DNA from: Paragordius varius
Lineage: Eukaryota; Animalia; Nematomorpha
Assembly: GCA_964247055.1 (NCBI GenBank)
Contig: OZ176054.1
Coordinates: 10,912,001 to 10,976,000 of the forward strand
Length of the DNA stretch: 64,000 nucleotides
Direction: 5' to 3'
The position numbers and the translations under genes are program-made. The notes below the pieces were generated by a model. That model saw nothing but the letters and a program-made list of their open reading frames with translations, had not been told where the DNA came from and did no database searches. How positions within the stretch are numbered: position 1 is the stretch's first letter; every line of letters starts with the position of its first letter. Positions 324 to 40,004 of the stretch are shown one piece after another.

Positions 324-3300
324 ATGCAATCCATCTTTTTAATCCTATTCTCTGGTAAGATTTGTGATAAAACACACCGTAGTTATAACCAGGACACAAT
401 TTATTTATATTATTAACTTCCAGAATTTTTTAAATTTGTAAGTATTGTATACAGTATTTTATTTAAAACTTTTGTGTGATTTTAGTTTTGTATTTGGAAT
501 TCGTAAACGGTCAAACATGTTTGGGGCCCGATTTTACCGGCTACCGTAGAGTATCATGCCAAAGGTAAACTATTTCTACTTATATTTTGTAGGTTACATT
601 TTAAATACTCTTTTTTGATATATTTATTATCATAAATTTACAGAGGAACCCCAAGATGCCGAAATGGAGCACGATTTGAAACGTGTGGAGTGGTTTATAT
701 TTTAACCTTTTTTGTCCTTTTTTAACGTTTAATTTTGGCTATTTAGCAGTCTTGCAAATTAAACGAAAATATAGCATCAAAAATTGGTTTGGCTATGATT
801 TTTCTAAACACTATTATGAAATATTAAATTAGGTTAGTCCTATAGGAAGCGTGGCAGCTAACATTGAAAAGTGCCAAGAGTTGAACGATGATGTAGAATA
901 TCAAGTCGTTCTACCACAAGGTATGCATTTGCATATAATTTATAACTATCAAAAATGATTATAATGGTTGTACCTTGTTTTATAATTTTCGGCTTAGTAA
1001 GGAATAATTTGTTATGCATAAATTAGTATTACTTAACTTGATTACCAAATTATTCTTAAATTATTGTAAATCGAGCGAACGATACCCGGAAAAATACATT
1101 TCATTTCATGCTTCCTGGAAATAAGTCAAAACCTAATACTGCATGACAAGATGGGTTAAAAAATATATTCGTTTGAAATTTTTTTACCTTGCTCATAACG
1201 TTATGAAATCTACTGTTATTAGTATGCTATGAAACTAATTTGATTATAAGGTAAATTGTTTGAATTACTGCAATGAGCTGCCAAACAGGTAAAAAAATTG
1301 ATACTATTTTTAAATGATTGTAATGAATGACTATGTGCTTAGATCATACATTTTAAATGTTGTATTCCTACTTTATTAAACCGAACTCATTCTTAAAAAG
1401 TACCAGCACTTTAAATCAATAAATGTTTCCAATACCGAAATTAACTAATACCACATTTTAATATAACAGAATGAGCACCTTAAAATTTGCTGGATATCTA
1501 TGATAATATGGTTTATAATCTATTGTTTCCTTAATATATTCCGAAATATTTGTAAAGTCTTCAATGATAACACAAAAAATTATAATTACAAAAACACTGT
1601 TTGTTATCCTATTCACATTTAGGCTGAAAACGTCTGTTGTAAAATTTAGGGATTATATAAAATATTAAAATACAGTCATGTATCTTTTATCAAAAATTTT
1701 TTGTTAAATGGGTATAAATTTTGTTGAATGAAAAAAAACGAGCTCTATGGTATTTAATAATTCATATTCATCAAAAAAAGTAAAAAAGTTTGCGGGAAAG
1801 GCGTCGAAAATCTTATATTGTAAATTCCGTGCTCTTTTAACATAAAATTTAAGATGAAGGGTTAGTTGTTAGTATAAATTAGTATAACACATTTTTACCA
1901 TATAATTTTCGACGCCTTTCTTCCACACTTCTTTTACTTTTTGTGAATATAATATTGTTAAATGCTAATAAAGCTCTAATTTTTCCGATCTTTAGCAAAT
2001 ATTTATACTCATTTAGCAAAAAAAATAAATTTATAACAAATTACCATGAAATAATATTTACCTAATCTAAAATTTTTTAATTATCTTCTGAAAACAGTGT
2101 ACAAAGTACTTTGATTCTATGGTAAAAATTAAACAGTTAAGTAAGTTCTCTTAGGTATTGCAAAACATAAACTAACAGTTGGAAACGATAATTCTCTAAA
2201 TAGATGTTATTCCTCTCAAATAGCTTCAATCATGTTGATATAATTCGATAAATACACAATATTTTGGCTTTTAACGAAAATGCCTTGAAAACAGTGACTT
2301 TCGTTGTTGTCAAGTACTATATATAGGGTGAACAGACGTCCCGCTTTTTCACACTTTGTCCCGCGTCCCGCTACGTTTTTAAAATGTCCCGCTTTTTCAC
2401 GATCATATAAAAAAAATTTTTTTAATACATTAAATTTTATATATTAAATTTTTTATCCGTTTAAACTTTTTATCATTAGTTCTCTTTGAAATCTATATCA
2501 ATTTTAAATTAAAATTTTTTATTTTTAAAAAAAAATATTTATTTTTTTCGAATTTATATCATATGATTATACACTTTGCTTCCCATTCCTACTGCCAAGA
2601 TTATTAAAAAGACAAATTAATTCCACAAATCGGTAGTTTATACGTCTACTCCAGAAAATTAAGGTAATAAAATATTTTTATATGCTAATATTAGTTTAAA
2701 AATATGAGTACAAAAAGAGGTTGTAAATTCAACGATGAATTAATGAAATGTTTTCCGTTTATCAAAAAAACGAAGAATGAATTATTTATTAAATGTTCTT
2801 TATGCGAGAGGGAATTTATCCTAGCACATGGCGGCAATGATCAAGCATATGGAAACACTGAAACTTAAAAAATGTTTAGATATGGCCGCATCATCTGACA
2901 AAAGCGATTTTTATCGAACAACTGCTTTTGGAGAGGAAGGAAAGAATTTGGCACTACCCGAAGGCGTTTTATCTTTTCACGCCGTTAATGACAATAATTC
3001 CTTTAGATCTATGGATTGTACCTGACAGGTTATTCGTACCTTATTCAATAAAAAATTTACATGTACCCATACAAAGGCTGAAGCCATTGTATGCAATGTA
3101 CTTTCGCTACATGCATTTTCTGAAATATAAAAAGATTCATATCGCTATACTCTGATGCATAAAATCACAAGGAAACAAAATTATTTCCCACTTTAATAAG
3201 TTATTTTGATCCAGAAACCGGTTAAAATTTTAGAGGTGGAAATTCCGACATAATTTATACTTCAATGATGAATGTTCTAGAAAAAAATTATTTAAAAGAC

Positions 3301-6300
3301 AAAATCATCGCATATTGCACTGACAACACCAATACGAGCTTCGGTGGAAAAGCAAGGAGGGGAACAAAAATTTTCATTTAGCAGATAATCTTAATCAAAA
3401 TTTTATTGCTGTTGGGTGTGCTGATTTGTTACCCCTAGATGTGGAAAATGTAGTTGTTAAAATATATTCCCATTTGTATATATACACGGTACGCGTTGAA
3501 ACTCTTAAGGAATTCTGTGAAAATACAGAATTTCAATATCAAAAAATGCTTGGATATTGTAAAACTTGTTGGTTAGCTCTTCTGTCAGCTATCGAAAGAA
3601 TTTTACAAATGTATGATCCTTTAAATCCTATTTTTTATCACAGAACAAATGTCCTACAACTTTGAAAAAGTTTCTTAAATTCTTCAAAAATATGGTTAGA
3701 GTTCATACATAATCAAACTTCTATCTTTCAAAATGTTATTAAATTGATAGAAGGTGACAAAATTTCGGCAATCGAAGTAGCCAATGAAGTTAGTAACCAG
3801 AAATTCCAATGTTTAGAAAGGTTAGCAAATAATTTTATAGCATTAACCATCCACAATATTATAAACAATTTATAAAAACAAGGCTTAAATAAATCGCCAA
3901 GATATCCTGTAACATATAAAAATGTTTTCTTAAAACTGTAAAGATTATTTGGAAGACTGGACGGTGCAATTCAATGAAATTGATCATTTTCATTGGATTA
4001 AAACCAGAATTTAATTGGTGCGATGTTCAAATTTGATTACATCTGCATCTCCCGAAAATTCCCAATAAGTAACAGAAAATTATTTTTTCTGAAGTATCAT
4101 TAGTTAAAAAATATATTATAATGAAAAACTTGAATTATGAACAACAGAATACAGTAATTATGTTCCATACAATAATATTTTTTGTGGATTTTGCACTATC
4201 TTTACTTGGAACCAACGCTGCTACTGAGCGCGTTTTTTTCACAGTAAATTAGGGTGTAAACATCGGAAAATTCAAATTTAAATGTTGAAACTTTAGAGGC
4301 CATTTTATCTGTCAAATATAATTTGACAATTTCTTGTGAAGACTTCTAGAATATTTTAGAAAATGATGACAATCTGCTAAAACGCATTCTCAAATAAAAT
4401 TATACTAAAAAATAAAATATTTACTATATTTAAATTGTAATTGTGTTAAAAATAAACAAATACAATAAATATTTTGTATAAAAATTTTTGGTTGTACTCC
4501 CCCATGCTCCTCCCCCCTTTCTCAGATTTGTCCCGCTTTTTCCTTCAAAAAATCTGGTCACCCTAACTATATATTTAATTTAAGTTCTTTTACGGATTTT
4601 TAGCATAACCCCTAATTTGCGCAACACATTTAAAATTTTTATTTTAAGTATGTTTTTATCATATTAGTGCGCAAATAGGCATTCCTAAAAAATATCTATC
4701 GTACTAAAAAATTTAGACAACTGTCGACTGACATGTACCTCGGATGATGGCGATGAACAAAACGGTGATGTGGTGGACGGAACGCTTGTGGGGGCAAATT
4801 TGTGCATAGGCGGACGGCTTTTTGCTATTCAGTATAATAATGATTATTTTTGTGTTTATGGTGGAAATTTTGTCTAACAAATAGTTTATTCGTTAACTAT
4901 GCTGCTCTAATCTATTTTTTATATGTAACTTATAAAATATCCGTTAAAAACAGGGGGGTCCAACACACATGGCTTCTTAGTGGGCATTTTAAATATATAT
5001 GCGGGTATTCATAATTATTTTATTTGTCAAACATAAGACTGTAAACAAACAGAAAACAATGTTTCTCGTTCGTTGTCATTTGCACACAAATCTATTTACG
5101 AAAAATCAATTTTATTAAGATATGTCAAGCAAATTTTGCATATTCATGTTTTGCGCGCCGCACATAATGTTTTGGAAGCCGCATGTTGGACACCCCTGGT
5201 TTAAAACATCGGCATGATATTTCACTGCTCATGGGCGTAAAATCGAATTCGATTGAAATTTACTAATTATGAATCTTTTATACTCATTGTTTTCGTGGAA
5301 TTGTTTTTAAATAATACTTATATATATTTTTTATTTTAGATATGGTGCACTTGTTCCACGTAAATATTTTCATTATTATATTTTTACAAATTTTGATGTT
5401 TTTTTAGAAAATTTTTAATTCTTAAATACTAAAATGTATAGCCGAGAATAAGATATCAATAAAAGCGCAAAAATTGTTAATCTACGAAATTAAAAATAAG
5501 ACACTGTATTTATATTGCATTATATATACACAGTACAAATATCCTGATAAAATTATACATTCTGATAAAAAATGTATGAGGTTATCATGGTGCTTTTTGC
5601 TTTTGGCCTTATGATTGATATTACCAGTTTTGTGATAACTGCTTCATATAAGAAAATGGAGAAATTTGCACGTATGTGCCATATTTTTTTTCGTGAAAGC
5701 TAAATGTTTCATTCCAAAAAATAGATGATATATCATAAGATATATAAATATAAAGCAAAACAAAACAGCTCCAATAATCTCAAATTTTTGCCTCCTTCTC
5801 TCCAATGGGGTTTTCTTTAAGGAAAGGCAAAAATATAGGGAATGCGTAATAAGAATTTTAAATATATGTGGATTATGACATCACAAAAAGTTTTTCCGCA
5901 AAAATGGATATTCACAGTAATTTATACCAAAATTTGTTTAGCGAGTTTTATTGTATTTTTAAGCATGGTGGAGACCGTAAAAAGCACCTGAACATATTAT
6001 AATAACACTTTTACTACATAATGCGATTGTGCTGAACTTATCTTTTTTATTTATACATGCAATGTTTTTTTTGTCAAAACACAGCTTATAAATAAAACAA
6101 AATGGGGTGATAGAATTGAGTATCATCAATTACACGAAAAAGTTATTTATAATATTTTGCTTGCCATTTAGATGCTCAAATATACCGTAAAATCGCTCTA
6201 ATTCGATTTTGTCAGAAAAAAATTTTTGTATGTCATAATTTATATATGAATTCTTGTCATGCATCTCGGTATTTTTATTTTTAAAGAAAAGCCCATTTGT

Positions 6301-6919
6301 AAGAGGAGCAAAAATTTTTGACTTTCGGAGCCCAAATCTAAATTAAATTTTCCAAAAAATATTGCTTTGCTTTTTATATGACTAGATGATATATTTTAGT
6401 AATATTTTTTGGAATGAAGCATTTAGCTCTCTCTCTCACACATACAAAATAATTATTAGCAAAATATATAAAATTTTGCCATTATCTGATATGGAGCAGT
6501 TATCATGCGGTAATATCTTTCTTATATCATTTGTAAAGCCGCGAACTAAATGCACCATGAGAATCATTATAAATTTATCTACCAGATTATATATTTAACT
6601 AAGATATTTTTTGTGTGTATTTTATAATTGCATTTAAATTTTCGAAGATGACTGAATAATTTTTTATTATTAAATTGTGGATTGATCACTTTGTAGAATT
6701 TGAAAATTGCCGTCCAGGATAATTTACCTAATTTAAATATCATAACAAATATTAAAACTCTATTTTTTACTTAAAGCGGTAATATGGTTTATTTATCTTT
6801 CAAATATATTTCTAGATGAAAATATTTTAGCGCAATTATTTCTGTACATTTTATTGATTGCTTTTAGCCATGTTTTTATCTCGTTATTTAGCGGCACCTG
6901 TTAGAACTCCCAGACCTGG

Positions 6920-6951
<32 letters not shown>

Positions 6952-9900
6952 TTAATAGGAAATCACGCATTTCCAATTTAAAATATGCATTAGGTTGTTC
7001 GAAATCATTATTAAAAATATGGAATATATTGAGGGATAAAAAATACTCTTAATTTAGTAAAACCATTAAAATCTAAAAATTGTTTTTCACTTATATTTTA
7101 AAGCATATATAAAAAAAGATTGACAAATTCGGCCCTAAATATTCTTAATATAAACAATTTTTCAGTCAAATGCAACATTTTTTCAAGCAAACGCAACATT
7201 TCTCAAGCAAAGAAAAAGCCTTGCATTAAAATGTTGGGTTTCGAAAATATATTGCGTTTGGTTGAAAAAATGCTTTTGTCTGAAAATTAGTGAAACTAAA
7301 TAATATATTATTTATAAGAATAATATTATCATAGGGTAAGAAGCATATCTATATATAATGGTTTTTATAATATTTTAAGTAACTCTCCCAGTTAGTGTCA
7401 AAGTCTTATGAACGCTTTTATTTGTTAATATGTGTATCTAATAGTAATTATCAGCGCAAAATTTTGTTTTTTAGGGTCATATTTTTTCATAAGGTCCCTA
7501 AAAACTGACAATATTAAATAATTTGATTCTGTGGTAAATGATTTTAATATTATTATTTAAATTCTGAAATATTACATTAAGAAATTTTACTAAATAAATG
7601 ACATTTGGGAATTAAGAGTTATATAAAATCATACGAATTTGCATAGTGCCGGAATCATACTTTTTAATAAACGGTCGTTGGATTCAAGAAAATTTTATAC
7701 GCGAAAATTGCGATCAAATGCAAATTTATCGATAAATATTTTTAATAAAAAATGACCGCATTCATCCTATAGGTCAAAAGACGTTATCAGTCGATCCCGG
7801 TTAAAATTTACAGTAATAATTAATAAATACTTCCCTAAATCGTGACAATAATAAAAATAAAAAGGTGTGTTTTTTTTCCCACGAGTTAAAAAAATGTTAT
7901 TTGCTTAGTGTTAATTGCTTGATAAAAAATCGCGAAATCATCTATCATATAATAAAAAAAATTTGGTAAAAGAAGGCTTTATTCCATACATTAAAATATA
8001 TGATATACTATTTCTAAAAATCAAAATATATTCTTATAAAATTAGATGTGAGTTTCGCAATTTTTTAATTTATTATTGCCCCCTCTAAAATGGGTTAGTT
8101 TCTATAAAATTAACCGAAAATGCCGAGATTTCGCGATATTAATATATGCTAAATTATGGCAATATGTTTTTTAAAAAATGTATACTTTGTTCAAAAATTT
8201 ATGAAACTACCGTAATATTATTTTAAGGATGGTGGAAATTTAAGATTTAAGATAATTTAAAAACACTTTAAAATTCTATATAGTTCTGCGATGAAGAAAA
8301 TTTCTATCTCAGAATTTGGAGTTTGTTTGACTTAATTGTTATATATAGTTATTTTGCCAAAATTTGAAAGCTGACGGTCCTTTAAATTAAAATTTCGAGG
8401 TGATAGAAAACAGCATCATTAAATTATATAGAAAAACTATCTTAAAGTGATTTTATTTTGTTTCCACTATGCTTAAAATACCATATTGTTAACCAAAATT
8501 TTGCTATAAATGAAAAATATGCATTTTTAAAAATTTTTTGCTGAAAAGTTTGATCGCACGATCTCGGTATTTCTACCTTAAATTTACAAAGCTTGGCCTT
8601 TTTGACCGATCTAAAAATTTGAGGAAGCCCACATCTAAAATTTAAAATTGTATAAAATTATTGTTTTGCTTTTTATATGTAGTTTATAATTAGTGATATT
8701 TTTTGAAATGAAGAAGTTAGATGTTAAAAAAAATTATTTAACATAATATGCGCAAATCGTCATTTTCTTATATGGAATTGTTACCACAAAAGTGGTAACA
8801 ACTTTTATATATCACTAGTAAGGCTTAAAGCCAAAAATGAAAATCCTGATGCATTTATCTATCAAAATACATATATATTTTTATCAGTTTGTGGAGACAC
8901 CCTGTAGATAAATAAAAATTTGTATAGAATATTATAAACTACAAAAAAATTTATTAAATTTTTTTTTCAAGTTGAATGAAAATTTCTAACCCACTTTAGT
9001 TAAGACCAAACGAAACCGGTTATAATTAATGTAATTTTGGCTTTAGGCCCTGTCTATCCTTTGGCTGATATAAACCATGTATTTTTATGCATATAAGAAT
9101 AAATATTGATATTCAAATTTTTTAATATATTATATTAGGCCGAGTCCGAGGCCCAGCCGGAGGACCAGGTAACTTTAATAACTTTTGCATAAAATATGTT
9201 AAAAAATTGAATTTTTTAGAGTATAACTACTAATGACTCAAAAAATAAGTTTTGTAATGCTGTATCAATAGCTTAAAGAAGCCTTTTTTGGGTTTCGTGT
9301 TTTCTCAATCAAATAATGATTTAAAAACATAGGTTTCAGATCTGATCCTATAATTGGGGTAATTATGTGCATAAAAATTCGTCTGCAAACAATAAATATA
9401 CGGATATGCATAAGTTAAATCTAATTTAATGGTTATAATTGTACGATTCCTTAGCTTATAATAATTCTAAACTTTTTTTTGCTGTTTTAAATAAAAGTCT
9501 TAAAAAAATTTCTTATTTATAAACGTGTCATGTTTCTTTATACTTGGCAAGGGAGGGGTCAAACGAAACCAAAACTGAAAGTGAGATCGGGTTAATTCTC
9601 AAAATAAATTTAAAGCGATTGATTAATTAGATAAACAAATAGCTTTGATTGAGGTTCTGGAAAATAAGAATATTTTATGCATATATTTAAATTTAAACAA
9701 ATTTATTAGGCAGAAGAAGAACAGCAACAGCAGGAGGTAACTAATAATTTTAATATTCCGCTCAATTATGTAATTTTCGACCACCTAAAAGTTTTAACTT
9801 TAATATATTAGGAAAAGAAATCATAAGATATTGGACTTCGAAATCTAATAGCTACTGTCAAAACAATTTTAAATAAATCATTATCAAATTACACTCTATG

Positions 9901-12900
9901 TTATTTAAATAAGATTAGTCGTGATTCATAGGCAGTCTCTTTAATTAATTAATTTATTTGTAAAAAGTTCAATTTTCTTTATGATATACAGTAGTATGTA
10001 TTTAGGATTATTTAAAAATATCTTTTAGATATAATATATTCTGATAGAAATTTATAATGATTACTAATTGAATGGAGACACGAATTATTTACAGTCATGT
10101 ATCCTTTATTTTATCAAAAATTTATTTTTTTTGTTAATTGGGTATAAATATTTGGTAAAGAATGGAAAAAACAAGAGCTCTATGGTATTATATATCATAT
10201 TCATCAAAAAAGTATAATAATTACCATAGAGCTCTTTTTTTCCATTCTTTAATTTATCATTTAATAAAGAAAGATAAATTTTTGATAAAATAAAGGATCC
10301 ATGACTGTAATTAAATTCGACTTTTGTGGTAATTGGTAGCTAAAACTCAGAAAATAATACACATTATATTAAAAAATTTTGGTAAAATCATTACCAAAAT
10401 ATTTTTTTTTATGAATTATATAATTTTAATTTGGGAGATGGAGGTGGGTTGCAAAAACCTTTTTAATATTTTAAATAATTTTTAAAAAAGAACAAACTTT
10501 GATATTTAATATAAAAATTTTGAAAAGCCTATTTATAATACTTTGAGGCATAAAATCGGTATTAATATATTATGTTATATCCATTTTTTCTATAATTTTA
10601 TGCTCAATTCCGAAATTTAATTAAAGGATACATCCGCCTTCGCATTTAAGCTAAACATAAAATGTGTTTTGACCACCAATTATTCAAATTTAAAATCGAA
10701 TGAATTTAAAAATATTGAGCTGATATTTCAGGAATTTTTATAATCTAGTTGTAACCTTCACAGTTTTGTTGTCTCATATCCTAAACTCTTAAACTCGCTA
10801 TCTATATAATTTTCAAAAAGGCGCTGAAAAGATTTGAATAGGCGCCAATATAGACTGTAGTAAAGCGTTGAGAATGTGTCATATTTCAGATTGTATGGAA
10901 TTTAAGCGGTGATTAATGCCAAAATCCATAGTTATAACTTAGGACCGGTAAGGTTAGTTCTTTTATCAAAATCTCCAAAATTGTTTTTCAAAATTTGCAA
11001 CATGTTTTATAGTTATCACCATCTGGAACCAATTATATGTTTGTGGTTTTGGTTTTCAGCCCTTCTATATACCCATTGGCAAATACAATCATGTGTTACA
11101 TCGATTTTTACTTTATAAATTTTTAGGCGGAGAGACACCAATACCAAGGGAAACATTTATAAAATTTACTAAACTTTTTTTTATTTTACAGCATTCATTA
11201 TATTTAAAAATGAGACTAAGAAGATTATATTTAGCAAAATAACATTCATATCGAATTAAATTCCAATTTATAAATAAACTCAAGACCGGACACCTGGTAA
11301 GAAAGATTAATTTTTGGTTTTAGTTGTTCACAAATATTTTAGGATAACCCAACAAACATAATTAAAAAATGGGAATATTCTCATTTAAATCGCTATAATT
11401 TATTGAATTAATAATATTGATGTCGTAATTTATAATAGTATATGAACAACGTCAAAATGTTTGATAAAGATCTGATATTAACATATGTAGGATTAAAAGG
11501 ATTTATTCTTATTATTGTGCGAAAATATTTTGAATAAATACACTAAACTAAGGTAACCTTATTTTTCAATGATTTCTTTAAATGTAATTTAAAAAGAAAA
11601 ATAACATTAAGATGTAAAGGCTAATAATAAAAACACTTATTTATTATCGGGGCAGTTTTTAAAAGTTTGCGAATACACACAATGTCCGTAATATTTGGTA
11701 ACTAAAATAAAAAAGCCTTTAAGTGCTTTTATCAAAAAATATTTTCAAAAAATTAATTGGGGACAACGTTTCCTAAATCATACTTTTTGCCGTCCGATTC
11801 TGGTGATTTTTACATAAACACTAAAATGGCTTATTAAACATATTATTATAATCAAATAAAGTTTAAAATTTAACTACAAAATGATAATTATGTTTGGACA
11901 ACATATTTTCCATAATTAAATTTAAAAACACCTGTTGAAATCCAAATTTACTGTAAACAGTCATAACTGTCTAATATGTTCATAATATATTTGATTATTT
12001 TTATTTATAAAACTTCCAATTATACTTTTTTCAAATAAATTTACCTAAATCTTTTTTGTCAATTAATTTTTGACACATTGTGATGCCTAGAGTGATGTGG
12101 AAACTTTAAATAGGGAGATCATAACTTAAAAATTATCTGGCAATTCGACTTAAGAATCATTAAGATAATAGATTTTTAGTATTTAATATTTTTTGATACG
12201 ACGTTTTAAATTATTATTATTTTTTTTATATTTTTATATTGAAGTTGCTGGGCCCCAACCTCAAGGTTTTAATATTTACTATTATTTTTTAACCATATTT
12301 TTAATATAATTCTTTAACACTAATAGGCTATAAAATATTTTACGACTCTAGCTTAATAGATTTATGGATATATGTCAAATTATATACTACCTATTATATG
12401 TAACCTTAATACTTTTAACTTACCTATATTTTTATCTTCTAACGACTGATATTAAAATCTTTTTGTAAAAAAATTATTATATCAAACTTTTTCGCAGCCA
12501 TTTTTTCTTTAAGTTTTTATAAAATTGTAACTCAACACGTAAAAAACTGTATGTGATCAATTAACTTGGAAGGCTTTAGAAATACGATTTACCACGAAAT
12601 TATTCCTATTTATTGATTAAATATCAGCCATTTGTTTTAATCGTGTTATAAGGCTCCTGATTTTGGGGGGGACTCTAGAAAAACTATAAAAATCTGTTTT
12701 TTAATTTAATCAGGAGAGGATTAGATATTTAAAATTTAACCAAAACAACTTCCAAAACACTAGTTTGTTTTTACCTTTTTTTGTCTGGGGTCGAACCAAA
12801 ATCTCGTGTACAAAAAATGAAAACGTAACGGAGTTTTAAATATAAAATTAATAAATGTAATCGATTAAGTATCATTATATTAAACAAATTACCTAAAACT

Positions 12901-13371: not shown

Positions 13372-13402
<31 letters not shown>

Positions 13403-17376: not shown

Positions 17377-17414
<38 letters not shown>

Positions 17415-27000: not shown

Positions 27001-29766
27001 ATGGCATTTCAATGATGGTTGATTCGCATCATAATAATTCAATAATTTTAACCAGTGGTTCCCAAAAGGGGCGTAGAAATATCCAAGGGGGCGGGATAAT
27101 TTTGGAGAATTAAAAAATAAAACTAGAAACATGTTGAAGAATTTCAGGTGCGAATTATCAAGATTTGTCACCGATATGGGAAAATATTTCAAATAATGCA
27201 GATATGAGGGGTTATTAATTTGATTGGAATTTTTATAATATTTTAATATATTGGACATTTTTATCTTGGATTTTTTGAGAGGGGAGTGGACGATGTTTTA
27301 TTTTTAATTTGGTGGGCAGTGATCAAAAAAAGGTGTAGGGAACCATTGTTTTAAACTGTTCAAATACATAAAATTTGGTATATATCCTTGGTTGTTGACT
27401 GAAAATATTTATTATTATAGGCGATTGTCGACTAACCTGTTCCTCAGAGAATAAGGAGGAAGAAAATGGTGATGTGGTTAACGGTACGATTGTAGAAAAA
27501 GGCATGTGCATCGATGGACGACTTTACACTATTCGGTATTATGTTTATTTTTATAAAATGGCACCAGTATGTTTTTGTGGATTGTTATGACTCAATATAA
27601 TTATCTAAAAATAAATTTTATTAAACTAAAAATTTAAAATTTTCTATTGAAATTTCTATATTTTATATAAAACTCATAGAGTTTTATGATATTTATTTCT
27701 CTAATATGCATCTATAAGTGAACTTCTAGGCGTCATATAATATCAAATTTTATTAATATATTAATTTTAGACCCAGTGTTAAAGAGATTATTTATTTATT
27801 TTTTCTAAGTATGATTCTAACACTGTGTGCAAAAAATTTTTTAACAAAAATATTTTTTTTATGATATAGTTTATGACCAGCGAATACATTTGCCGTAAAA
27901 TTTTTATTGGTTTACACTCAGGTTTTTGAAATATTGAGAGAAAATCGAAATCGGGCAAAAAGAAAATTAAAGATAATTAAAAAAATAATTGTAAAAGTTG
28001 AGATATTATGGTTTGTTATCATTATAAGAGATATTTTAATATTTATATAGCCTAAATTATATTAATAGCATTTCTAAATTTCAAAAGATGGCGTTTTTCT
28101 TTTTACATATATTAGAGTTAATAATATTTTCATGAAAATATATTAAAATAATTTTTAATCAATGCTAAACTTACTATTAAATTCTTAACATTCATTTTTT
28201 ATCCAGTATAATACTTCTATCTCATAATACTATAAATTATTGTTTTTTATTTTTCATTTTTTGTCATCTGATTTTATGACGGTATAAAAATTTACTGTCT
28301 TAATTTGTATTTATCACATGAGCGGAGATAAATAAGTAAATAAATTAATACAAAATAAAATTTACAAATGGAAAATCAACCAAAATATCCCAGTAAAAAA
28401 TATTAATTTGTGTTAAACAACATTGTTACAGGGATTTTTAGAATTTGTTGTATGATAATCCACTACTTTTAAATCCAATTTTGCATTTATATACGTTATA
28501 ACTTCCACTCATACATGATTCCAAAATAAAACAGTAATTTATTATACCGTCATAAACCAGATGACAAAAATAAAAAACAATATTTTTTAAAATTATTTTG
28601 TTTTTTTTTACTGAATAAAATATGAATGTTAGGTTAATAGTGAATTTAGCTAGTAAATAATCTTAAAAAATTATTTTAATATAGTTTTATAAATTTTGTG
28701 TTAACAGGAAAACACCATCTTTTGACCTGAGATTTTATAGAAACCCTATAGGCTATTTTTGAATTGTTAATTATCCTTAATTTTCACTTTTTGCCCGATT
28801 TCGATTTTCTCTTAATATTTCAAAAATTAGATCGTCAACAAATTAATATTTTTCCAGCATATGAATTCACTGGTCATAAGTTATCTCATGAAAAAAAATT
28901 TTGTTAAAAAAGTTAACCCGCTATTTTGCGCACAGTGTAATATCGATTTTGATATATTATATAATATTTTGTTTCCTTTAGATATGGTGTACTTGTTCCA
29001 CGTAAATTCTTAATATATTTTATATTATATTGTATGTATATCTGTAATGAATTTTTAAAAAACAATTATTTGAATATCTGCAGAACTAGAACTGAAATTT
29101 AATGACGTTTAGGAAAACGATTTAACATAACAAATTTAATGATATGATATATAAACCCAATATTACATAGTTCGGCAAAAATGGGTACAAATATAAATTT
29201 TAATGAAAAATTATATATCATTTGATAGCTTAAAAGCTTCAGGATAATATATTCGAAATGGTAAATCAAAAAATCCCATTTTAATCGCGTCAATGTTTAA
29301 TAAAATTTACAATAGAGGAAAACGCGTCGTCAACTAAAATTTTGTAAATAATCAGAAGGTCCTGAAAAGACCATTTAAAAGAATCGAAGGTAAAAAACAC
29401 TTAAGCGCTTTTAATCACAATGAATTGTTATTATGCGAAAGATTTAATTTTCACATCCACTATCATCTATTTACTATACATATAAAAATCATCCAATATA
29501 ATCGTGTTTAAAAAATGATTAAATCTTGTTATAAAAACGAATTTTAATTTGAGCAAAGCATAAGTACCGTACAGTTTTAAAATCTCTAAAATAATTACAT
29601 ATAGTTTTTTTACAGTTTAATGCAAGAAATATCTATCCCCTTAGTTTTTTAATTCAGGGAATTTTTCTACCCGAAAATTGTAATTATATATTTTGATAAC
29701 ACTTTCGTTATTAATCCAGGCTTTTAAGCATTAAACTCCTTAAATATTATAAATCTCTGCATCAAA

Positions 29767-29808
<42 letters not shown>

Positions 29809-32800
29809 TGTAAAAATTAACATATTTTTTAATGAGATAGCTTATGACCAGCGTATTTAGCCGTTAAATTTTTTTAGCTTACGACCTGGTTTTTGATATA
29901 TTGTGGAAAGTCAATCAGGCAAAAAATAAAAATTAAGGATAAATAAGGATAATTCAAATAATAATAAATTTTAAAATATTATGGTTTTATATTTTAGCAG
30001 ATATTAATATAAGAGCCTATAATCATATTTTTAGGGATTTTAGATTGTCAGTTCAAATGGCGTTTTTCTTTAACACACGTATAATACAAAATTTTTTTAT
30101 GAAACTATATTTAAAATAGTTTTTTAATTATTTATCAGCTAAACTTACTATTAAACTTAACCTTCATATTTTAGTTAATAAAAAACTCATATAAAAAATA
30201 ATACTTAAAATGTTTTTTATTTTTTCAGTATTTTGTCATTAGGTTTATTGTATAAAAAATTTACTGTCTAATTTTGGAATCTCACATGAGCTTGAATTAT
30301 AGTTTATATAATTTAAAACAAAATAAAATTTACAACTAGTGGAAAATAATCAAAAATACTTACATATCCAAGTAAAAATATTATTTTGTGTTAAAACAAT
30401 TTTACATTTTTTGAATTATATTTAATTTTCCCTAATTTTCTCTTTTTGCCCAATTTCGATTTTCTTTTAATATTTCAAAAACTAGGTCGTCAAATTATGC
30501 GGCAAATAAATTCATTGATCATAAGGTATCTCATGGAAAAAAAATTTTCGTAAAAAAATTACCCTCTTTTTTGCACACAGTGTATATATATGATAATTTT
30601 ATCAAAATAATTTTATGGATAAAAACAAGTTTGGTGAATATTTTGATTTCAGTGCATTTTTTTTGAAATTTACTTATTTTTTATTATTTTTTTATTTAAA
30701 GATTTTAACCATGTTTTATTTTTTTTTATTATTTAGGGTCATCTTCTAAAACTGGAAAACCTGGTATTAAATTTTTATATGATCAATAAAAACTTATTAA
30801 TAGTAAATTCAGAGATACATTTTAAATATGGAATACTCACATCACCTTAAATTTTTTATTTTTATGGTAACAACGTGTAGGCAAAAATTTAGACTCAACC
30901 ACATATTTTCCTTCCCTTCAAAACTATATTAAATGATCTTATTTTAAATAGAATTTTGAGATTGGTGAGCAGAGGCCTAGCTAGGGGGAGAAAAGGGCGC
31001 CATATTTTGAAACTTTTTTTAATTTTATTTCAAAAAAAATTTGGTATGTAAAATTTATCATATTAAATAATACAGGAAAAAACCACCCATTTATGAGTGG
31101 TCATCTCTACGGTTTGAATTTGATTATTTTTTATAAAAATACAAGGGATTGCATGGAGAGGGCGCCAGAAATGCAAGCTAGGCCTCTGTTGGTGATAGAT
31201 GTAAAATAGATAAAAATAAATACATCAATAGAAGCACATTTTATTTAGAATTTCCCGCAATATTCAATACTTTGTATAAAATATCCTTTTTCCAACCTCC
31301 TTGTGAATATCTTAAGAAAATATGTCAAAGTCAAATATAATCCTAATTAATTATTTAAAAAATACCTTATATAAAAAAGGATATTTAAATAATTGGCAAC
31401 ATGGCCAAAAAGAGCGCATGTTTTGACAAATATAAATATTTTTTGTGTAAATTCAATGTATTTAAATTTATAGCCTATAATAGTAATGAAATATTGAGTT
31501 TTTTACCCGATAATTGTGATTCAATATTTTGGCACCACATACATGTTTTGAATTTTATTTTCGTCCAAAAAATTAAGAGGAATACAAGCTTTTATGCGAA
31601 TTTCGGAAAAAAGTATTTGAAGTTATATGATAAAATTTTATAATACTTTTAATTGCCAGTCAAATAACCTATCAAATTATTTTATGTAAGGAGCGCGCGG
31701 CCCATTGGTTGAAAATACAAATGTAGTAACATAATTCGTGAATAGAATCAATACGTAAACTTAAAGGCAAACAATTCTTTTTAAAGAATAGCACGAATTT
31801 TAACTATTATTTTTTTACAATAATTATAAAATTTTTGAAGAACCTAATTGATTCTCGTATTTCACTTACCCAAAACGAGGGTGTTTAGAAAAGACAAGAT
31901 TTGAAAAAGGATACCATGGTGTCCAGTTTTCAATAATTATATATAAAACCTTTCCCCAACACTCTTTGGGCTATTTTTATAGTAAATTTTAAAGTAAAGC
32001 TTAGAATAGGAACCGATTATTATATAATGTAAGTTAAGAAAACTATCTTCTGGATAAATGCAGCCGGTTTCGCAATGTTTGTTAAAAAGAAGGAAACTGA
32101 CTTATATGCGCTCAAATAACCGTTTGATATACTATACCAGACCATATTGCACTATTATTTATTTGCTGTTTGTTTTTAAACAAAATAATTAATTGCAAAA
32201 CAATTAATTCATGTATTATTCCTTTATTTATAAGATTAGATTTATCTGTTATCAAAGTTGTAAAATAGGAAGAAAATGATTAATTTTAACCTTTTTTGCT
32301 CTTTACCCATATGCTACTGTATTGCCAATTGACCATCAGTAATGCGAATTGGCTAGCATTATTGTGCTAAATACTTGAATATAATATACTTAGAACGCCA
32401 ATATTATAATAATTTGGAAAAAATCATGATAAGCTATTTAGTATATCCAATAAAGTGTAATTAATTAAATGATTTTTTTGCAGTACGGCACTGCATCCAT
32501 AATCGGGGGATATAAAAGTATCCTGATGAAATATATAGATTCTTATCGGAAAATGTATCAGGATTATATGGTGCTTTTGGTTTTGGCCCTTACTAATTAT
32601 ATAAGAAAGTTATTTATACTTCTGAGGTAACTGCTCCATATCAAAATATGGCATAATTTGCGCCCATTTTTAAATATTTTTTTTTGGTGAAAGCTATGTT
32701 TCATTCCAAAAAATATTACTAAATATATTGATGTATAAATAAAAATTTTAATGAAAAATTTGTTTCTAGATACGCAAAAGTCCCAAATTTTTTTGCTCTT

Positions 32801-35800
32801 CTAAAATGGGCTAGTTACCTTAATATAACCGTAAAAATGCCAGAATTGTACAAAAAAATTTAAATATATGAGTTTTGATACCGACTTAAAATATTTTTAG
32901 AATCCACACCTTTTTTTAAAATGTTTAATTTTAAGCAATATTTTGATGAAGCGTACAACGGTTGCAATTTAAAGTTCGTTTGCATTGAAATTTTGGCATA
33001 GACAGTTTATATTTAATATAAATTAAAAAATCATTTAAATCAATATTTTGAGGTGAAAGGGATGTCCAAGCATCATAAATTCAAATAGGTATTTTATAAT
33101 ATCTTAAAACCTTTTATGTGCTGTTTACATCATCCTCAAATATTAAACATGGTTCAACAAAATTTCGTTAAAAAATTAAATTTTTGTAAAAAAGCAAGAA
33201 TATTTTTAGAAATATATTTGGTTTACACATTAAAATTTAGCATATATTATGTATATATCGGGCAATCTCTGCATTTGGATAATTCCAAGAGAATTAGACC
33301 ACTTTAGATAAGCGAATAACCTTGGGAATTTCGGAATCCACATCTACTCTAATTTAAATATTATTTTAAGTTTATGCTATACATTAGTGATATTTTTTTG
33401 GAACGAAACATTTAGCTTTTACCAAACCAATTTTAATTAACAAAATGGACCCAAATTTCATATTATAATATGGACTAGGTATCCCAATAGTGTATTCAAC
33501 TTTCTTAAAACACTCGTAAAGGCCAAAATCAAAATTAAGCAATGATAATCCTGATAGATTGTCCTATCAGAATGTATATATATTTAATCAGTATATTTTG
33601 TTATATATGTGATGTGAATTCCGTTGTTCTTTAAAAATATTAAAATATTTATTTTAAAGCATCTACTACACGAGCCACCCCACCTCCAACTCAAGCACCA
33701 CCAGAGTTACCTTCACTGGCATCAGGCATATTTTTTATATTTCATTTTTATATTTTGGTAATGAAGCTCTATTTTTTTTCATAAAATAAAAAAAACATAA
33801 AGGGAACATTTAAAAATGTTTTTTAACTAGAGATTTGAAATATTTTAATTACTAATCCATATTATTTAGGACCAACTGATGCACTCCTGAGTAAGTTTTC
33901 GTACATAAATATTATACCAATTACTAAAATATTTCATTAATAAAGTATATTTCTGAAACATACCCATTTGAGTTTATAATTCAATTGTTCTTACTACATA
34001 TTAATATTTTGTTTAAATTATAAATTTATAAGAAAATATTTAGCAAATATTTTGGAAACGTTCCTTAGACAAGTGCAAATATATATTATGATTATTAGGT
34101 ATGACTGATGCACTCCGAAGTAATTATGTATTCATATTGCGATTCACCAAAACTATTTTATTTATATTTAAAAAATTTTTTTGTAAATCACTTGCTGAGC
34201 AAATAATGCAGTATATTTTATACTATGGACAAAACGTAAAGACAAACATATTTTTTGAGCTTTAAATACAGTATGCATTTTAATGTATGTTCAATAATTT
34301 TATTGCCAGTCGAATAACATAAATGGTTTATCCAATGCGTAAAATACTGACCCACGAAATTATTTCGTAGTACACATATGAAAGAGGATTGACGTGAGAA
34401 TTAACATAGGCTTTAATTTGATGGATATTTTGTAATGTTAAATTTTGAGAATATTATAGCAATTTATGTTAACATTTGTAATATTGTAGTTACATATTTA
34501 GATGCGGAATTTTGTGGGTTTTTATCTTTGATAAATTAATAAATAGTAAAATATGTATTTTAAGATATTTTATGTTAATTATCCTAAATTTAATAATAAA
34601 CATTTTTCAACATGCTAAATACCTGTATTAATCAATCTTGGTATTATAATTTTATATAGTTATACCTAATTAAAAAACACAGGTAAATATATATTTGTGA
34701 AAATTTAAGTAAATTTTAGATTTTTGTCTTTTATGTTTTGCATTATTAATTATTGATAATATTTAAGTATTTCAGACATTTTCAGGTAAATATTCGGTTA
34801 TTTAGTTAAATTTAATTTTTTTTGTTTTTTTTTGTAACATTGTTATAGTAATCAATTACTACATATTTTGGACATTATTATAAATACAGGTAAAAATTGC
34901 GGTTTTTAACAAATTTAGTAAAAATTTAGTTTTTTTTTGTTTTTTAGGTTTTGCATTGTTAATTGTAATTAATTACTACATATTTTGGACATTATTAAAA
35001 ATACAGGTAAAAATTGCGGTGTTTAACAAATTTAGTAAAAATTTAGTTTTTTTTGTTTTTTAGGTTTTGCATTGTTAATTGTAATTAATTACTACATATT
35101 TTGGACATTTTAATAAATACAGGTAAAAATTGCGGTTTTTAATAAATTTAGTAAAAATTTTAACATTCGTATTTTGTATCATTGTTATTTGTTATTTATT
35201 ACTAAACATTTTGGACATTTAAAAAAACAGGTGAAAATTGAGGTTTTTAATAAATTAAAAAATTTTTATTTTTTTGTTTAACCTTGCTAATTTATTAATT
35301 ACTATATATTTTTGATACATTGATATATACAGGTAAAAATTACTATCATTTGCGGTTTTTTAAATTTTTAGGAAAATTATTTTTTTTGTTTTACATTGAT
35401 AACTAATATATTAAATAGTTAACATATCTATGCATACAGGTTAATATGCATGTTGCGGTTTTATGTTTGACATTTTATTTATCAAAATCCAACTATGTAC
35501 ATTTTAACAAACACCTTATGTCACCAAAGATTGAAAATAAGATCAAGATATATAAAACATCTTTTAAAGTATCTGAATATCGCCAAATATAAATATATTT
35601 ATTTAAATTATAAATGTATAATTATACAAAATATTCATAATATTATGTTTAAAATTAGCATTCTTCTTATTGATATTACAGGTAATTTCTTTCTAATATT
35701 TATAAACGATGCGGTGTGCGTTCATGATCATATCTTAGGTAGATTCTATCAACTAAATATAAGATAGAAAAGTATTTATTAATATTTTAGAAAATTGATA

Positions 35801-38800
35801 CCTGGATTCTAGAAGTATTTTTATCATAATTTTAAATATTGGGGGCAAAAACATTCAAAGTTTGAAAGGGACTTGGCTTTTTAACAAATTTGCAAAAAAA
35901 TATTTTCTTCATGATAAAAAATTCAAAAATGATACTTTATGTTTTTGCCTTTTCGTTCTACTATCCTAAACTATAAATATGAAATTCTTCACCAAAGCAA
36001 TCAATGTTAGTGTTGCCTGCTTAGTTTTTGGAGTGCTGTTGCATTCAAAGCTTTTGAAAAAAAAATATTTGTTTCTATTTTCTATTTGACGTCATTAGTG
36101 AATCATATAGTCCTTTTCATATTTATAGTTTGGGATGGTAGAACGAAAACGCAAAAACAAAAAGTATCATTTTTTAATTTTTATCATGAAGAAAATATTT
36201 TTTTGCAAATTTAGTTGTTAAAAGCCAAGTCAACCTTATTTAGTTTCCTTTCAAACTTTGAATGTTTTTGCCCCCAATATTTAAAATTATGATAAAAATA
36301 CTTCTAGAATCCAGGTATCAATTTTCTAAAATATTAATAAATACCTTTTTATCTTATATTTAGTTGATAGAATCGACCTAAGATATGATCATGAACGCAC
36401 ACCGCATCGTATATCAATATTAGAAAGAAATTACCTGTAATATCAATAAGAAGAATGCTAATTTTAAACATAATATTATGAATATTTTGTATAATTATAC
36501 ATTTATAATTTAAATAAATATATTTATATTTGGCGATATTCAGATACTTTAAAAGATGTTTTATATATCTTGATCTTATTTTCAATCTTTGGTGACATAA
36601 GGTGTTTGTTAAAATGTACATAGTTGGATTTTGATAAATAAAATGTCAAACATAAAACCGCAACATTTACCTGTATGCATAGATATGTTAACTATTTAAT
36701 ATATTAGTTATCAATGTAAAACAAAAAAATAATTTTCCTAAAAATTTAAAAAACCGCAAATGATAGTAATTTTTACCTGTATATATCAATGTATCAAAAA
36801 TATATAGTAATTAATAAATTAGCCAGGTTAAACAAAAAAATAAAAAATTTTTAATTTATTAAAAACCTCAATTTTCACCTGTTTTTTTAAATGTCCAAAA
36901 TGTTTAGTAATAAATAACAAATAACAATGATACAAAATACGAATGTTAAAATTTTTACTAAATTTATTAAAAACCGCAATTTTTACCTGTATTTATTAAA
37001 ATGTCCAAAATATGTAGTAATTAATTACAATTAACAATGCAAAACCTAAAAAACAAAAAAAACTTTACTAAATTTGTTAAACACCGCAATTTTTACCTGT
37101 ATTTTTAATAATGTCCAAAATATGTAGTAATTAATTACAATTAACAATGCAAAACCTAAAAAACAAAAAAAAACTAAATTTCTACTAAATTTATTAAAAA
37201 CCGCAATTTTTACCTGTATTTATAATAATGCCCAAAATATGTAGTAATTGATTACTATTAACAATGTTACATAAAAAAACAAAAAAAATTAAATTTGACT
37301 AAATTTAAAAACCGAATATTTACCTGAAAATGTCTGAAATACTTAAAAATTATCAATAATTAATAATGCAAAACATAAAAGACAAAAATCTAAAATTTAC
37401 TTAAATTTTCACAAATATACATTTACCTGTGTTTTTTAATTAAACTATATAAAATTATAATACCAAGATTGAATAATACAGGTATTTAGCATGTTAAATA
37501 ATGTTTATTATTAAATTTAGGAATAATTAACATAAAATATCTTAAAATACATATTTTACTATTTATTAATTTATCAAAGATAAAAACCCACAAAATTCCG
37601 CATCTAAATATGTAACAACAATATTACAAATGTTAACATAAATTGCTATAATATTCTCAAAATTTAACATTACAAAATATCCATCAAATTAAAGCCTATG
37701 TTAATTCTTACGTCAATCCTCTTTCATATGTGTACTACGAAATAATTTCGTGGGTCAGTATTTTACGCATTGGATAAACCATTTATGTTATTCGACTGGC
37801 AATAAAATTATTGAACATACATTAAAATGCATACTGTATTTTTACTTTTACCCAAAATTAGATTTTTAGAAAATTGAGGTTAGGAAAATATGGTGGTTAT
37901 CTTTAAATATATTTTTGTCTTTTAGTATTTAAGTGTCTGTATATATTCTTACTGTAAATATATTAAGATAAAACCGTCGCTAAATGGATCGATCCTGAAA
38001 ATGGAAAAGAAACAATACGTAAATTGAACGCCAAATGCAAAAAACAATATGGAATTAACTTTATTTATGAACCTCAAGGTTTATTTTCTATATATATATA
38101 TGCTGTATATATGATTTATTCAATTAAAAAAATATAATTAATATTATAACTAAATCCGATTTATACAGCATGCATTTTAATGTTTGCATATTTACTATAG
38201 TAGGGCAATTTGCACCACAGTATGTCAAAAAGAAAGGAAATAACTGATTTTATTAATCATTTTGCCGTTTTTTTCCACCGCAAAATCTTTATTTGATGAC
38301 AATCTTGTTTTTGAAATATCGAGAAAAAATCAAAATTGGGCAAAAATATGCAAAATTAAAAAAATAATGATAAAACTTGAGATATTATGGTTTATTATCA
38401 TTTATAAATAGTCTAAAATTATATAGTTGGGATTTTTAAAAAATTCAAAAAACTCGCGTTTTTCTAATGACATACTAAAAGACAATTTTTTTTAATTAAA
38501 TTATATTAAAATAATTTTTTTAATTATTCTCAAGCTAAACTCACTGTTAAAACCTAAAAAATATTGTTTTTTATTTTTGCATTTTTTTGTCATCTGGTTT
38601 ATTGATTCTTTAAAAAATTTACTGTTTTATATAGGAATCTTTCATGAGCGGCAATAAAGTATTTAAATTTATGAAAATAGGATTTACGAGTGGTGGAATA
38701 TCGCCCGAGAATCCGTACAAATCCCAATAACAAAATTAATATGTAAAAAAACCTGTTATAGGGATTTTTAAGGATTGTTGTTGATAATTCCAATATTTTT

Positions 38801-39921
38801 AACCTATTTTGCATAAAAATATATACTTTTCCCGCACATGTAAGATTCCAAAATTAAACAGTAATTTTTCACACACTCATAAACCAGATGACAAATAAAT
38901 GAAAAAATAATATTTCAGATTATTTTGATATATATGTTTTTGATATGAATGTTAAGATTTAATTGAGTAGATAGTAAATAAAAAAATTATTTTAATGTAA
39001 TTCCGTAAATTTTTTTGTCTTTTAAGTACGTCATAAGAAAAACGCCATTTTTTGATCTGATTTTTTTTAAAAAATTCTGACCATATAATGTTAGGCATTT
39101 ATAAATTGTAAATCTGCTAAAATTATAATAAACCATAATATCTCAAATCACATATTTTTTTAATTATTTTTCATTTTAACTCCTCCCCCAATTTTGATTT
39201 TCCCTCAATATTTTAAAAACTAGGTAGTCAACATTTTTGGGGCAATTGTATTATCTGGTCAAAGCTATCTCATGAAAAAAAATTTCGTTAAAAAAATAAC
39301 TCGAATCTCACCAAAGTAATATAGGGTTTTAAGCACGTTTTTTTGGGTAAAATTTGAAGGGAGTTTCCAGTTGAGAATTTAAGATATTGTGATTGTAGTA
39401 TATGATTCCAAAATTTATTTGGTAGCTTACCATATATATATATATATATACATTATATAATTAATTTTCATTCTGTGATTTCTAGGGGGTATCAATGTAT
39501 GTAAATTGTTTTGTCGAAACACTGAAACTAATGAACTCCAAGATACTGGTGAGTTTGTTCCAGATGGTTCGATATTTAACTTGGTGTCTCTAAATGAAAT
39601 ATGCGTTCGTCATATAGTTTATACTATCTAGTAAGCCAATTCTATCATATAATTTATATTGTTTTTGTTTTACATAGATTTTATAATGATAATTTGATAG
39701 GAGAAAAATATTTTAATATATATGCTAAACATACAGTAAAAAAATTAAAATTAGTGGACAAAACCTAAAAACAATTGTTTTAAAAAAACCGCTATACTTC
39801 ATTTTACGTGAATCTTTTAATATAACTCATTTTTTGCAAAGTATGAAGAAATCTTTAAAATTAAGTTATAGAAAAAATAAGGTGTAACAAATTATGATTA
39901 TTTTGAAATTCATTTTTTGCA

Positions 39922-39963
<42 letters not shown>

Positions 39964-40004
39964 ACCTTTATTTTTACAGTAACAACAGTTTGAAACCAAA
40001 GTAA
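24028..40004 (+). CDS. Gene B: tandem paralogue of gene A, secreted ADAMTS/papilin-like protein, 265 aa, 13 exons; second TSP1-like segment deleted
   Basis: Exons 24028-24058, 24180-24258, 24337-24385, 24753-24840, 27421-27535, 28982-29001, 30737-30763, 33660-33725 (GC donor), 33870-33890, 34099-34119, 37968-38078, 39486-39630, 39980-40004; 798 nt open. The first six exons have the same sizes as in gene A (31, 79, 49, 88, 115, 20). Protein: MKIIYSFLLSVSYLVSVNG/QTCLGPDLTGYREVECQTGSTACEDGKRYETCGV...VCKLFCRNTETNELQDTGEFVPDG...ICVRHIVYTIYNNSLKPK*. AATAAA at 40121. Confidence 0.82.
24443..24683. mobile_element. hAT-type MITE in intron 3 of gene B
   Basis: TIRs CAAGGGTTTCCGACAC / GTGTTGGACACCCTTG; perfect 8-bp TSD TTCTATAG. 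Absent from the matching intron of gene A. Confidence 0.85.
27053..27348. mobile_element. hAT (Charlie-like termini) MITE
   Basis: CAGTGGTTCCC ... GGGAACCATTG; imperfect 8-bp TSD ATTTTAAC / TTTTAAAC. Confidence 0.6.
27821..28937. mobile_element. ~1.1-kb palindromic TA-type DNA element; related copies 29804-30582 and ~38270-39300
   Basis: Termini CACTGTGTGCAAAA / TTTTGCGCACAGTG|ta. The arms mirror each other (TATGACCAG / CTGGTCATA, AAATCGAAATCGGGCAAAA / TTTTGCCCGATTTCGATTT). Confidence 0.75.
30970..31188. mobile_element. hAT-type MITE
   Basis: TIRs CAGAGGCCTAGCT / AGCTAGGCCTCTG; TSD TTGGTGAG / TTGGTGAT. Confidence 0.8.
34269..37836. mobile_element. 3.57-kb foldback (giant palindromic) element with tandem-repeat arms, in an intron of gene B
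   Basis: ta|CAGTATGCATTTTAATG ... CATTAAAATGCATACTG|ta. Arms of ~1.7 kb (34269-~35983 and ~36116-37836) surround a ~130-bp spacer. Each arm holds several ~118-bp tandem units. Mirror ORFs at 35495-35767 (+) and 36349-36621 (-). Confidence 0.9.

Follow-up and report, generated by a model that had tools for sequence, protein, structure and literature searches.

The window analysed here is a 64,000-nt stretch (positions 10,912,001-10,976,000 of contig C5) from an animal genome that comprises 110.6 Mb in 44 contigs. It contains two tandem genes, A and B, which together with a third paralogue elsewhere in the genome, gene C, encode a small family of cysteine-rich proteins. A complete module of these proteins, as we read it, has about 100 residues and 8 Cys and is spread over four exons, which we call a, b, c and d (a' to d' in the second module). 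We consider it likely that the products are secreted, non-catalytic, disulfide-rich proteins with two modules, in which exons c and d form a Cys-rich unit of the CA type known from ADAMTS proteins, the disulfide between its fourth and sixth Cys (C4 and C6) has been replaced, and exons a and b form what is probably a reduced thrombospondin type 1 (TSP1) repeat. All three genes are unannotated, and annotation based on open reading frames (ORFs) misses them. The family is a variation on the known protease-less ADAMTS derivatives, not a new kind of protein, because ADAMTS-like proteins, papilin and tick ixostatins are already protease-less relatives.

The window is AT-rich (G+C about 25% throughout, as in the genome as a whole), and long ORFs are scarce in it. 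An initial annotation, made from the sequence alone, had described a tandem family of protease-less mini-ADAMTS proteins with paired cysteine loss. We checked its motifs by a six-frame scan of the window and then rebuilt the exons with canonical AG/GT borders. The quoted motifs were all present on the plus strand as described (DGTLV at 4776, NGTIV at 27480, DGALY at 18494 and DGSIF at 39563; GxR[FY]ExCG at 666, 17315 and 24359), and colinear exon-level matches between two sets of GT-AG exons bore out the two tandem genes.

Exon d resembles the Cys-rich exons of ADAMTS-type genes

The similarity to ADAMTS proteins is carried by exon d. When the alignment of the six d exons of genes A, B and C (alignment A1) was compared by hhalign with an alignment of four ADAMTS-type Cys-rich exons from the same genome (alignment A3), the match reached 93.1% with an E-value of 3.1e-7 and a score of 33.3. 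Column shuffles of the d-exon alignment scored 9.1 +/- 2.5 with a maximum of 19.2, and none of the 300 reached 33.3. In the resulting alignment CxLxC falls opposite CxxYC, V-x-DG-T opposite DGT, and C-[IV]-x-G opposite C-x-x-G. Exon d is similar to the ADAMTS-type exons beyond what shuffled columns produce. Furthermore, in exon-by-exon Pfam searches, which for the d exons covered the C-terminal half of the Adt-1-like domain alone, A2d, B2d, C1d and C2d, four of the six d exons (named by gene and module), had Adt-1-like (PF25379) as their best family (E 0.05-0.08, 13.8-14.4 bits). The same profile matched the clear ADAMTS-type exons of this genome more strongly. Exon C1d also gave weak matches to ADAMTS_CR_2 and to Salp15 (the latter with E 0.11 and 13.3 bits).

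The two Cys that are missing from exon d occupy defined positions. C4 is replaced by V, V, V, Y, F and H, and C6 by L, L, I, V, V and V in the six modules of the alignment. The Cys-rich disulfides of ADAMTS13, Cys450-487, 483-522 and 508-527, correspond to C1-C3, C2-C5 and C4-C6 (PMC6706451), and the initial assignment of C4 and C6 as a pair agrees with Cys508-527 of that structure. The claim that both residues are lost in every module also held, in six of six modules with gene C included, which amounts to the substitution of two hydrophobic residues for a complete disulfide. By analogy with ADAMTS13, the remaining disulfides C1-C3 and C2-C5 would be kept.

Several observations weigh against an ADAMTS origin of this half of the module. 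No Pfam match attained the gathering score (about 14 bits as against the 31.8 bits set for Adt-1-like), and A1d and B1d were without any Pfam match, as were the a and c exons. The exon-d profile retrieved no ADAMTS chain from the PDB sequences, and the exon-d and exon-c profiles gave only chance 'VDGT' matches to glycosidases. When exon c was compared by hhalign with the canonical ADAMTS TSP1 repeat plus the beginning of the Cys-rich domain, no similarity could be measured, and its comparison with a TSP1 profile gave nothing; its tentative assignment as the part bearing the C1 helix is based on its position and a loose 'NPI...xC' resemblance. The c|d intron shares the phase of the canonical ADAMTS gene intron but lies about 20 residues away from it, and was therefore not counted as support.

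One could accordingly suppose that the resemblance arose by convergence of a short Cys pattern in an unrelated, lineage-specific, Cys-rich secreted protein. All database matches fall below threshold, two of the six defining Cys are missing, and a search of 1.84 billion representative proteins with a d' profile brought up no ADAMTS protein, as the exon-d profile brought up none in the PDB. Nevertheless, we regard convergence as improbable. The match is not confined to the Cys but takes in CxLxC, V-x-DGT after a gap of 10-14 residues, and then C-[IV]-x-G, all correctly spaced, and the hhalign score lies about 10 standard deviations above shuffles that keep the column composition. Moreover, the d and d' exons share their top Pfam family although they are only about 30% identical, and the missing Cys make up exactly one disulfide pair. 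The origin from ADAMTS ancillary domains that had been proposed for the whole module thus stood for the Cys-rich half and is weaker for the TSP1 half.

Origin of the N-terminal half of the module

Exons a and b encode a unit with the motifs TCxG...R..C and C.xG.R...C. As had been noticed at the outset, the unit has no WxxW and keeps four Cys, not six, which sets it apart from a canonical central thrombospondin repeat (TSR) with its Trp ladder. The a+b unit lies N-terminal to the CA-like unit, in the position of the central repeat T1 of ADAMTS proteins; in ADAMTS13, T1 and CA pack as one rigid unit, and CA is a protein-interaction domain (PMC4885070). The intron between exons a and b is in phase 2 and falls 1-5 codons after the Cys of R..C in all five a exons, and in two ADAMTS-type genes elsewhere in the genome (L004 and L029) the TSP1 repeats have a phase-2 intron four codons after the equivalent Cys. 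Reduced TSP1 repeats already occur in other ADAMTS-type genes of the same genome.

The competing explanation holds that exons c and d alone come from ADAMTS, and that exons a and b encode a small disulfide knot of a different kind, which is novel or has diverged too far to be assigned. It draws on the profile searches. No Pfam TSP1 family matched the a exons (the b exons, with 16 residues, are below the size limit of the search), and a genome-wide search with the TSP1_ADAMTS profile gave no match in the window, so that the Pfam comparison suggested as a check returned Adt-1-like, below threshold, for the d exons and no TSP1. In the comparison with a TSP1 profile made from repeats of the same genome, the score of exon a (15.1) was reached by 1 of 200 shuffles and that of exon b (14.9) by 2 of 200, but the two exons were interchanged, with exon a on the second half of the repeat and exon b on the first. 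A further weak alignment placed exon a not on TSP1 but on the 'FRDEQC' beginning of the Cys-rich domain. In addition, if the four N-terminal Cys correspond to TSP1 C2-C5, the Cys were not lost by disulfide pairs; the loss would count as 'paired' or not according to whether the first Cys is C1 or C2 of the TSP1 repeat. These points are opposed by the T1 position of the unit, its two motifs, the phase-2 intron after the Cys of R..C that it has in common with the TSP1 repeats of the genome, and the reduced repeats elsewhere. We judge a separate knot to be rather unlikely, and a TSP1 descent of exons a and b to be reasonably probable from position, motifs and intron phase.

Predicted secretion and absence of other ADAMTS domains

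The N-termini consist of about 20 mostly hydrophobic residues with small residues at the end, followed by 'QTC', and lead straight into module 1. This arrangement fits secretion by way of a predicted signal peptide. The four places in the genome that the Reprolysin profile matched all lie outside the window and away from gene C. Likewise, the profiles for the spacer (PF05986) and for ADAMTS_CR_3 (the CB subdomain, PF19236) matched other loci, namely a gene array on contig C2 and an ADAMTS gene on contig C4, and nothing in the window or gene C. The TATAAATA box found upstream of each ATG argues against hidden upstream protease exons, and beyond the last Cys of exon d' the proteins continue for 8 residues. 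Protease, CB and spacer are absent from genes A, B and C, in keeping with the initial description of the proteins as secreted and protease-less.

Gene C and the size of the family

Gene C was found by a whole-genome search with exon d' and lies on a different chromosome (contig C4), which also carries a canonical ADAMTS gene with Reprolysin, ADAMTS_CR_3 and spacer matches. It is compact, spanning 4.5 kb (positions 1823-6277 of locus L027), and has both modules complete, GT-AG introns throughout and the intron phases of gene A (2-0-1-2 for the first module, 2-0-1-stop for the second). We joined its 11 exons and counted lengths, stops and Cys; the result was 837 nt, or 278 codons, without an internal stop, closed by a terminal stop and containing 16 Cys. 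The joined exons thereby confirmed the 8 Cys per complete module given earlier. A Pro/Arg linker between the modules is encoded by two small exons of 26 and 57 nt, and a TATAAATA box lies about 80-100 nt upstream of the ATG.

Genome-wide, a profile of the a exons found exactly five such exons, and the a and d profiles recovered genes A, B and C only. Since these profiles recover the exons of the three genes and nothing else, the family consists of three genes in the 110.6-Mb genome. The tandem arrangement suggested for the family applies to A and B, the third member being on another contig, and the family is not large.

Genes A and B are tandem duplicates with colinear blastn and tblastn matches at the level of single exons. 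Their non-synonymous divergence (dN) is 0.22 and their synonymous divergence (dS) 0.64, a ratio of 0.34. Between these two genes and gene C the synonymous sites are saturated, yet every Cys, phase and exon border is retained. Gene structure, paralogy and purifying selection are thus apparent in all three genes. That the genes are decaying or untranscribed duplicates, or that the exon chains are artefacts of AT-rich sequence, seems to us very improbable. Such an explanation could appeal to gene B, whose second module lacks two exons, to the very long introns of genes A and B, which reach about 11 kb and contain retrotransposon debris, and to the short 5' introns of the two genes, which are about as similar as the exons. 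However, the 11 exons of gene C chain in an open frame in sequence where stops are frequent. The 16 Cys, the phases and the GT-AG borders have been kept despite the saturation of synonymous sites, dN/dS is well below one at 0.34, and the remaining exons of gene B hold their frame through a phase-1 acceptor.

Exon structure of genes A and B

The coding sequence of gene A extends from 324 to 18562 on the plus strand, on which all exons described here lie, and is divided into small GT-AG exons. A TATAAATA box, read directly as a TATA box, is located at 260-267, about 50-55 nt upstream of the ATG. Exon 1 (324-354; 31 nt, phase-1 end, donor gtaaga) contains the ATG and the first part of the predicted signal peptide and is homologous to exon 1 of gene B. 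In module 1, exon a (486-564; 79 nt, phase-2 end) encodes the end of the signal peptide and then TCxG...R..C with 2 Cys, and exon b (644-692; 49 nt, phase-0 end) encodes C..G.RFE.CG, again with 2 Cys. Exon c (833-920; 88 nt, phase-1 end) encodes PIG...KCQEL with 1 Cys and is 74% identical in amino acids to its counterpart in gene B, the residues upstream of the Cys included. Exon d (4717-4831; 115 nt, phase-2 end) supplies 3 Cys in CxLxC...VVDGTLV...CIGGRL and aligns to the ADAMTS-type Cys-rich exons.

Module 2 of gene A begins with exon a' (16393-16486; 94 nt, phase-1 start and phase-2 end), which encodes TCVG...FRSERC with 2 Cys and is 70% identical over 23 residues to its gene C counterpart. 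It is followed by exon b' (17296-17344; 49 nt, phase-0 end; C..G.RFE.CG, 2 Cys), exon c' (18082-18160; 79 nt, phase-1 end; 1 Cys) and exon d' (18417-18562; 146 nt with a TAG stop), the last encoding CKLFC...VPDGALY...CIRNRV with 3 Cys (Pfam Adt-1-like, E 0.056). Gene A therefore has two complete 8-Cys modules. Each contains the 49-nt exon and the phases 2-0-1, as initially reported; the final phase 2 that had been given for both belongs to module 1, whereas module 2 ends at the stop.

The modules are separated by long introns with candidate linker micro-exons of 20, 30, 18 and 21 nt (5340-15991 in gene A and 28982-34119 in gene B), which are G+C-rich and mostly symmetric in phase 1. Some of them are conserved between genes A and B, which supports one transcript per gene. 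The first candidate in gene A, obtained from a scan of splice sites and frame, is a 20-nt exon leading from phase 2 to phase 1 (5340-5359); its region is 83% identical to 28957-29021 in gene B, and the 26-nt exon of gene C belongs to the same phase class. A symmetric (phase 1-1) candidate of 30 nt (9139-9168), with 77% G+C and a Pro/Arg/Gly-rich product, resembles the Pro/Arg linker of gene C. A further symmetric candidate of 21 nt (15971-15991) is conserved in gene B, where it appears in duplicate (33870-33890 and 34099-34119); the first candidate of gene B (28982-29001; 20 nt) is homologous to 5340-5359.

The coding sequence of gene B (24028-39631, plus strand) likewise consists of small GT-AG exons, and its TATAAATA box, the putative TATA box, is found at 23969-23976, about 50 nt upstream of the ATG. 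Exon 1 with the ATG and signal peptide (24028-24058; 31 nt) is followed by the exons of module 1: a (24180-24258; 79 nt), b (24337-24385; 49 nt), c (24753-24840; 88 nt) and d (27421-27535; 115 nt), the last encoding CxLxC...VVNGTIV...CIDGRL. Of the second module, gene B has the C-terminal half, that is, the last two exons: c'' at about 37968-38078, with 1 Cys and an uncertain acceptor, and d'' at 39486-39631 (146 nt with a TAG stop; CKLFC...VPDGSIF...CVRHIV; Pfam Adt-1-like, E 0.073). No a'' or b'' exon of gene B was found by tblastn, regular expressions or the a-exon profile. Whichever of the two candidate AGs is used, c'' starts in phase 1, the phase required for splicing it directly to the phase-1 linker exons, and gene B therefore appears to be intact, with its second module shortened, and not broken. 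With this half, the window holds three complete modules and one half instead of four, so that the description of two modules per gene applies to gene A and has to be amended for gene B. The end of the feature had been set at 40004; the last coding positions are 18562 in gene A and 39631 in gene B.

The introns of both genes also contain repetitive sequence. A reverse-transcriptase fragment (RVT_1, E 4e-25) at 14536-15623 on the plus strand, within a long intron of gene A, is retrotransposon debris. Short repeats, some of them inverted, are scattered through the introns of genes A and B (17937-17988 and 24632-24683; 5534-5754, 6386-6611 and 8685-8888 versus 32513-32745 and 33374-33599), and one translates to a deceptive Cys-containing peptide. 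An apparent exon encoding 'NTALEAICVGHPC' (24607-24732 and 17945-18016) was rejected as a repeated intronic element.

Relationship to known proteins

Protease-less proteins are among the closest described parallels. ADAMTSL1-6 and papilin are secreted proteins encoded by genes of their own that contain ADAMTS ancillary domains without metalloprotease or disintegrin-like domain, and they are thought to be non-catalytic in the matrix (PMC4885070). Genes A-C resemble them in having neither of these two domains. However, ADAMTSL proteins and papilin keep the core T1 - CA - CB - spacer, usually with more TSRs, whereas the present family has no CB and no spacer. Its T1-like part has 4 Cys and no Trp ladder, its CA is without C4-C6, and the combination of T1-like part and CA is duplicated across a micro-exon linker. 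The CA of ADAMTS13 and the families PF25379 and PF17771 (ADAMTS_CR_2) share with exon d the motifs CxxxC, V-x-DGT and C-[IV]-x-G at the right spacing, but in each of the six modules hydrophobic residues stand in for Cys508 and Cys527, and the C1-C2 loop is about half as long.

Tick ixostatins, or Salp15-type proteins, are small, secreted and Cys-rich with likeness to the ADAMTS Cys-rich domain, and their AlphaFold core pairs 2-4, 3-6 and 5-7 correspond to C1-C3, C2-C5 and C4-C6 (PMC9779611). They are single-domain salivary proteins that retain all core Cys, in contrast to the two modules and the N-terminal 4-Cys unit found here. None of the d exons matched Salp15 (PF12115) above its cut-off; C1d alone matched, at 13.3 bits versus 27.8 bits.

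Reduced ADAMTS-type genes exist in the same genome as well. A gene on contig C3 (in L029) and the array on contig C2 resemble the family in alternating a TSP1-type unit with a CxxxC...DGT.C...C.xG.C unit and in having a phase-2 intron inside the TSP1 unit. They keep the protease (L029) or the spacer (C2 array), the Trp motif and the C4-C6 pair, whereas genes A-C do not. The array itself (contig C2, about 1,302,000-1,420,000; L004-L020) is a tandem series of about 13 ADAMTS-type genes at about 10-kb spacing, with matches to Adt-1-like, TSP1, ADAMTS_CR_3 and spacer and none to Reprolysin in a limited scan. Isolated exons with a full six-Cys Adt-1-like match (E 2e-7 to 7e-6) were present at L001, L002 and L006 (C3:11426063, C5:13315460 and C3:4939257). 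No Reprolysin match lies near them, and they may represent further protease-less ADAMTS-type genes; outside the family, L006 comes nearest to the d' exons (BLASTP E 4e-6). An ADAM-type gene at about 5177-7353 of L028 (C7:2290001-2300000) has an intron with at least 8 tandem copies of an exon edge encoding 'CGNGFLEPGEECDCG'.

Searches beyond this genome returned no relative. A profile of the three d' exons gave three matches among the 1.84 billion representative proteins, which we dismissed as spurious because all were cysteine-free repeat proteins. Among metagenome contigs, 246 pattern matches were obtained and none was confirmed, and a feature search of the ESM Atlas with exon d' led at best (0.79) to beta-helix proteins, which provided no lead. 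The family is likely lineage-restricted, although this is not proven because a 47-position profile has limited reach and the databases may omit this genome and its close kin.

Proposed role of the two-module proteins

The proteins would be small, secreted and non-catalytic, with about 280 residues in the case of compact gene C. Their architecture would comprise a signal peptide, module 1, a flexible Pro/Arg/Gly-rich linker encoded by micro-exons, and module 2. In each complete module, exons c and d would provide the ADAMTS-type CA unit with the ADAM_CR fold (Pfam 'Adt-1-like'), in which two hydrophobic residues take the place of C4-C6, and exons a and b a 4-Cys unit at the position of the central thrombospondin repeat, probably a reduced TSP1 repeat without the Trp ladder. 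The protease, the disintegrin-like domain, the CB subdomain and the spacer would all have gone. By analogy with the V-loop and HVR exosites in the CA of ADAMTS13, the two CA-type knobs may serve as protein-binding surfaces, and the protein may bind extracellular ligands bivalently or cross-link them, or it may compete with ADAMTS-type proteins for these ligands. In module 1 the segment from C3 to DG, the counterpart of the HVR exosite in the CA of ADAMTS13, is variable and has an acidic character; in module 2 it is conserved, and this difference would fit two binding specificities.

We tentatively suggest, with less confidence than we place in the domain assignment, that a T1-CA unit was released from the protease, CB and spacer, stripped of its Trp ladder and one disulfide, and duplicated on a linker. 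The outcome would be a lineage-restricted bivalent binder with no counterpart in the databases, possibly a decoy or organiser for substrates of the expanded and reduced ADAMTS-type genes of this genome. If true, a CA knob, probably with a minimal remnant of the thrombospondin repeat, can stand alone without CB and spacer. To our knowledge, all described ADAMTS-like proteins retain the CB and spacer domains. It would also follow that one of the three CA disulfides is dispensable, which would be useful for defining a minimal ADAM_CR fold. The family would help to explain the repeated trimming of ADAMTS-type genes in this genome and adds three genes that ORF-based annotation misses. It opens no long-standing question and, as a variation on ADAMTS-like proteins, is not revolutionary.

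Other genes in the window

Two further coding regions lie downstream of gene B. A single-exon ORF of 374 amino acids at 59965-61086 on the plus strand encodes a basic helix-loop-helix protein (HLH, E 4e-19), for which no record with the identical sequence was found. On the minus strand, three large ORFs of 172, 400 and 376 amino acids (45353-49952) probably belong to one exostosin-like glycosyltransferase gene; the first encodes an N-terminal membrane anchor with a coiled-coil-like region, and the second has a weak match to Exostosin GT47 (E 0.0045).

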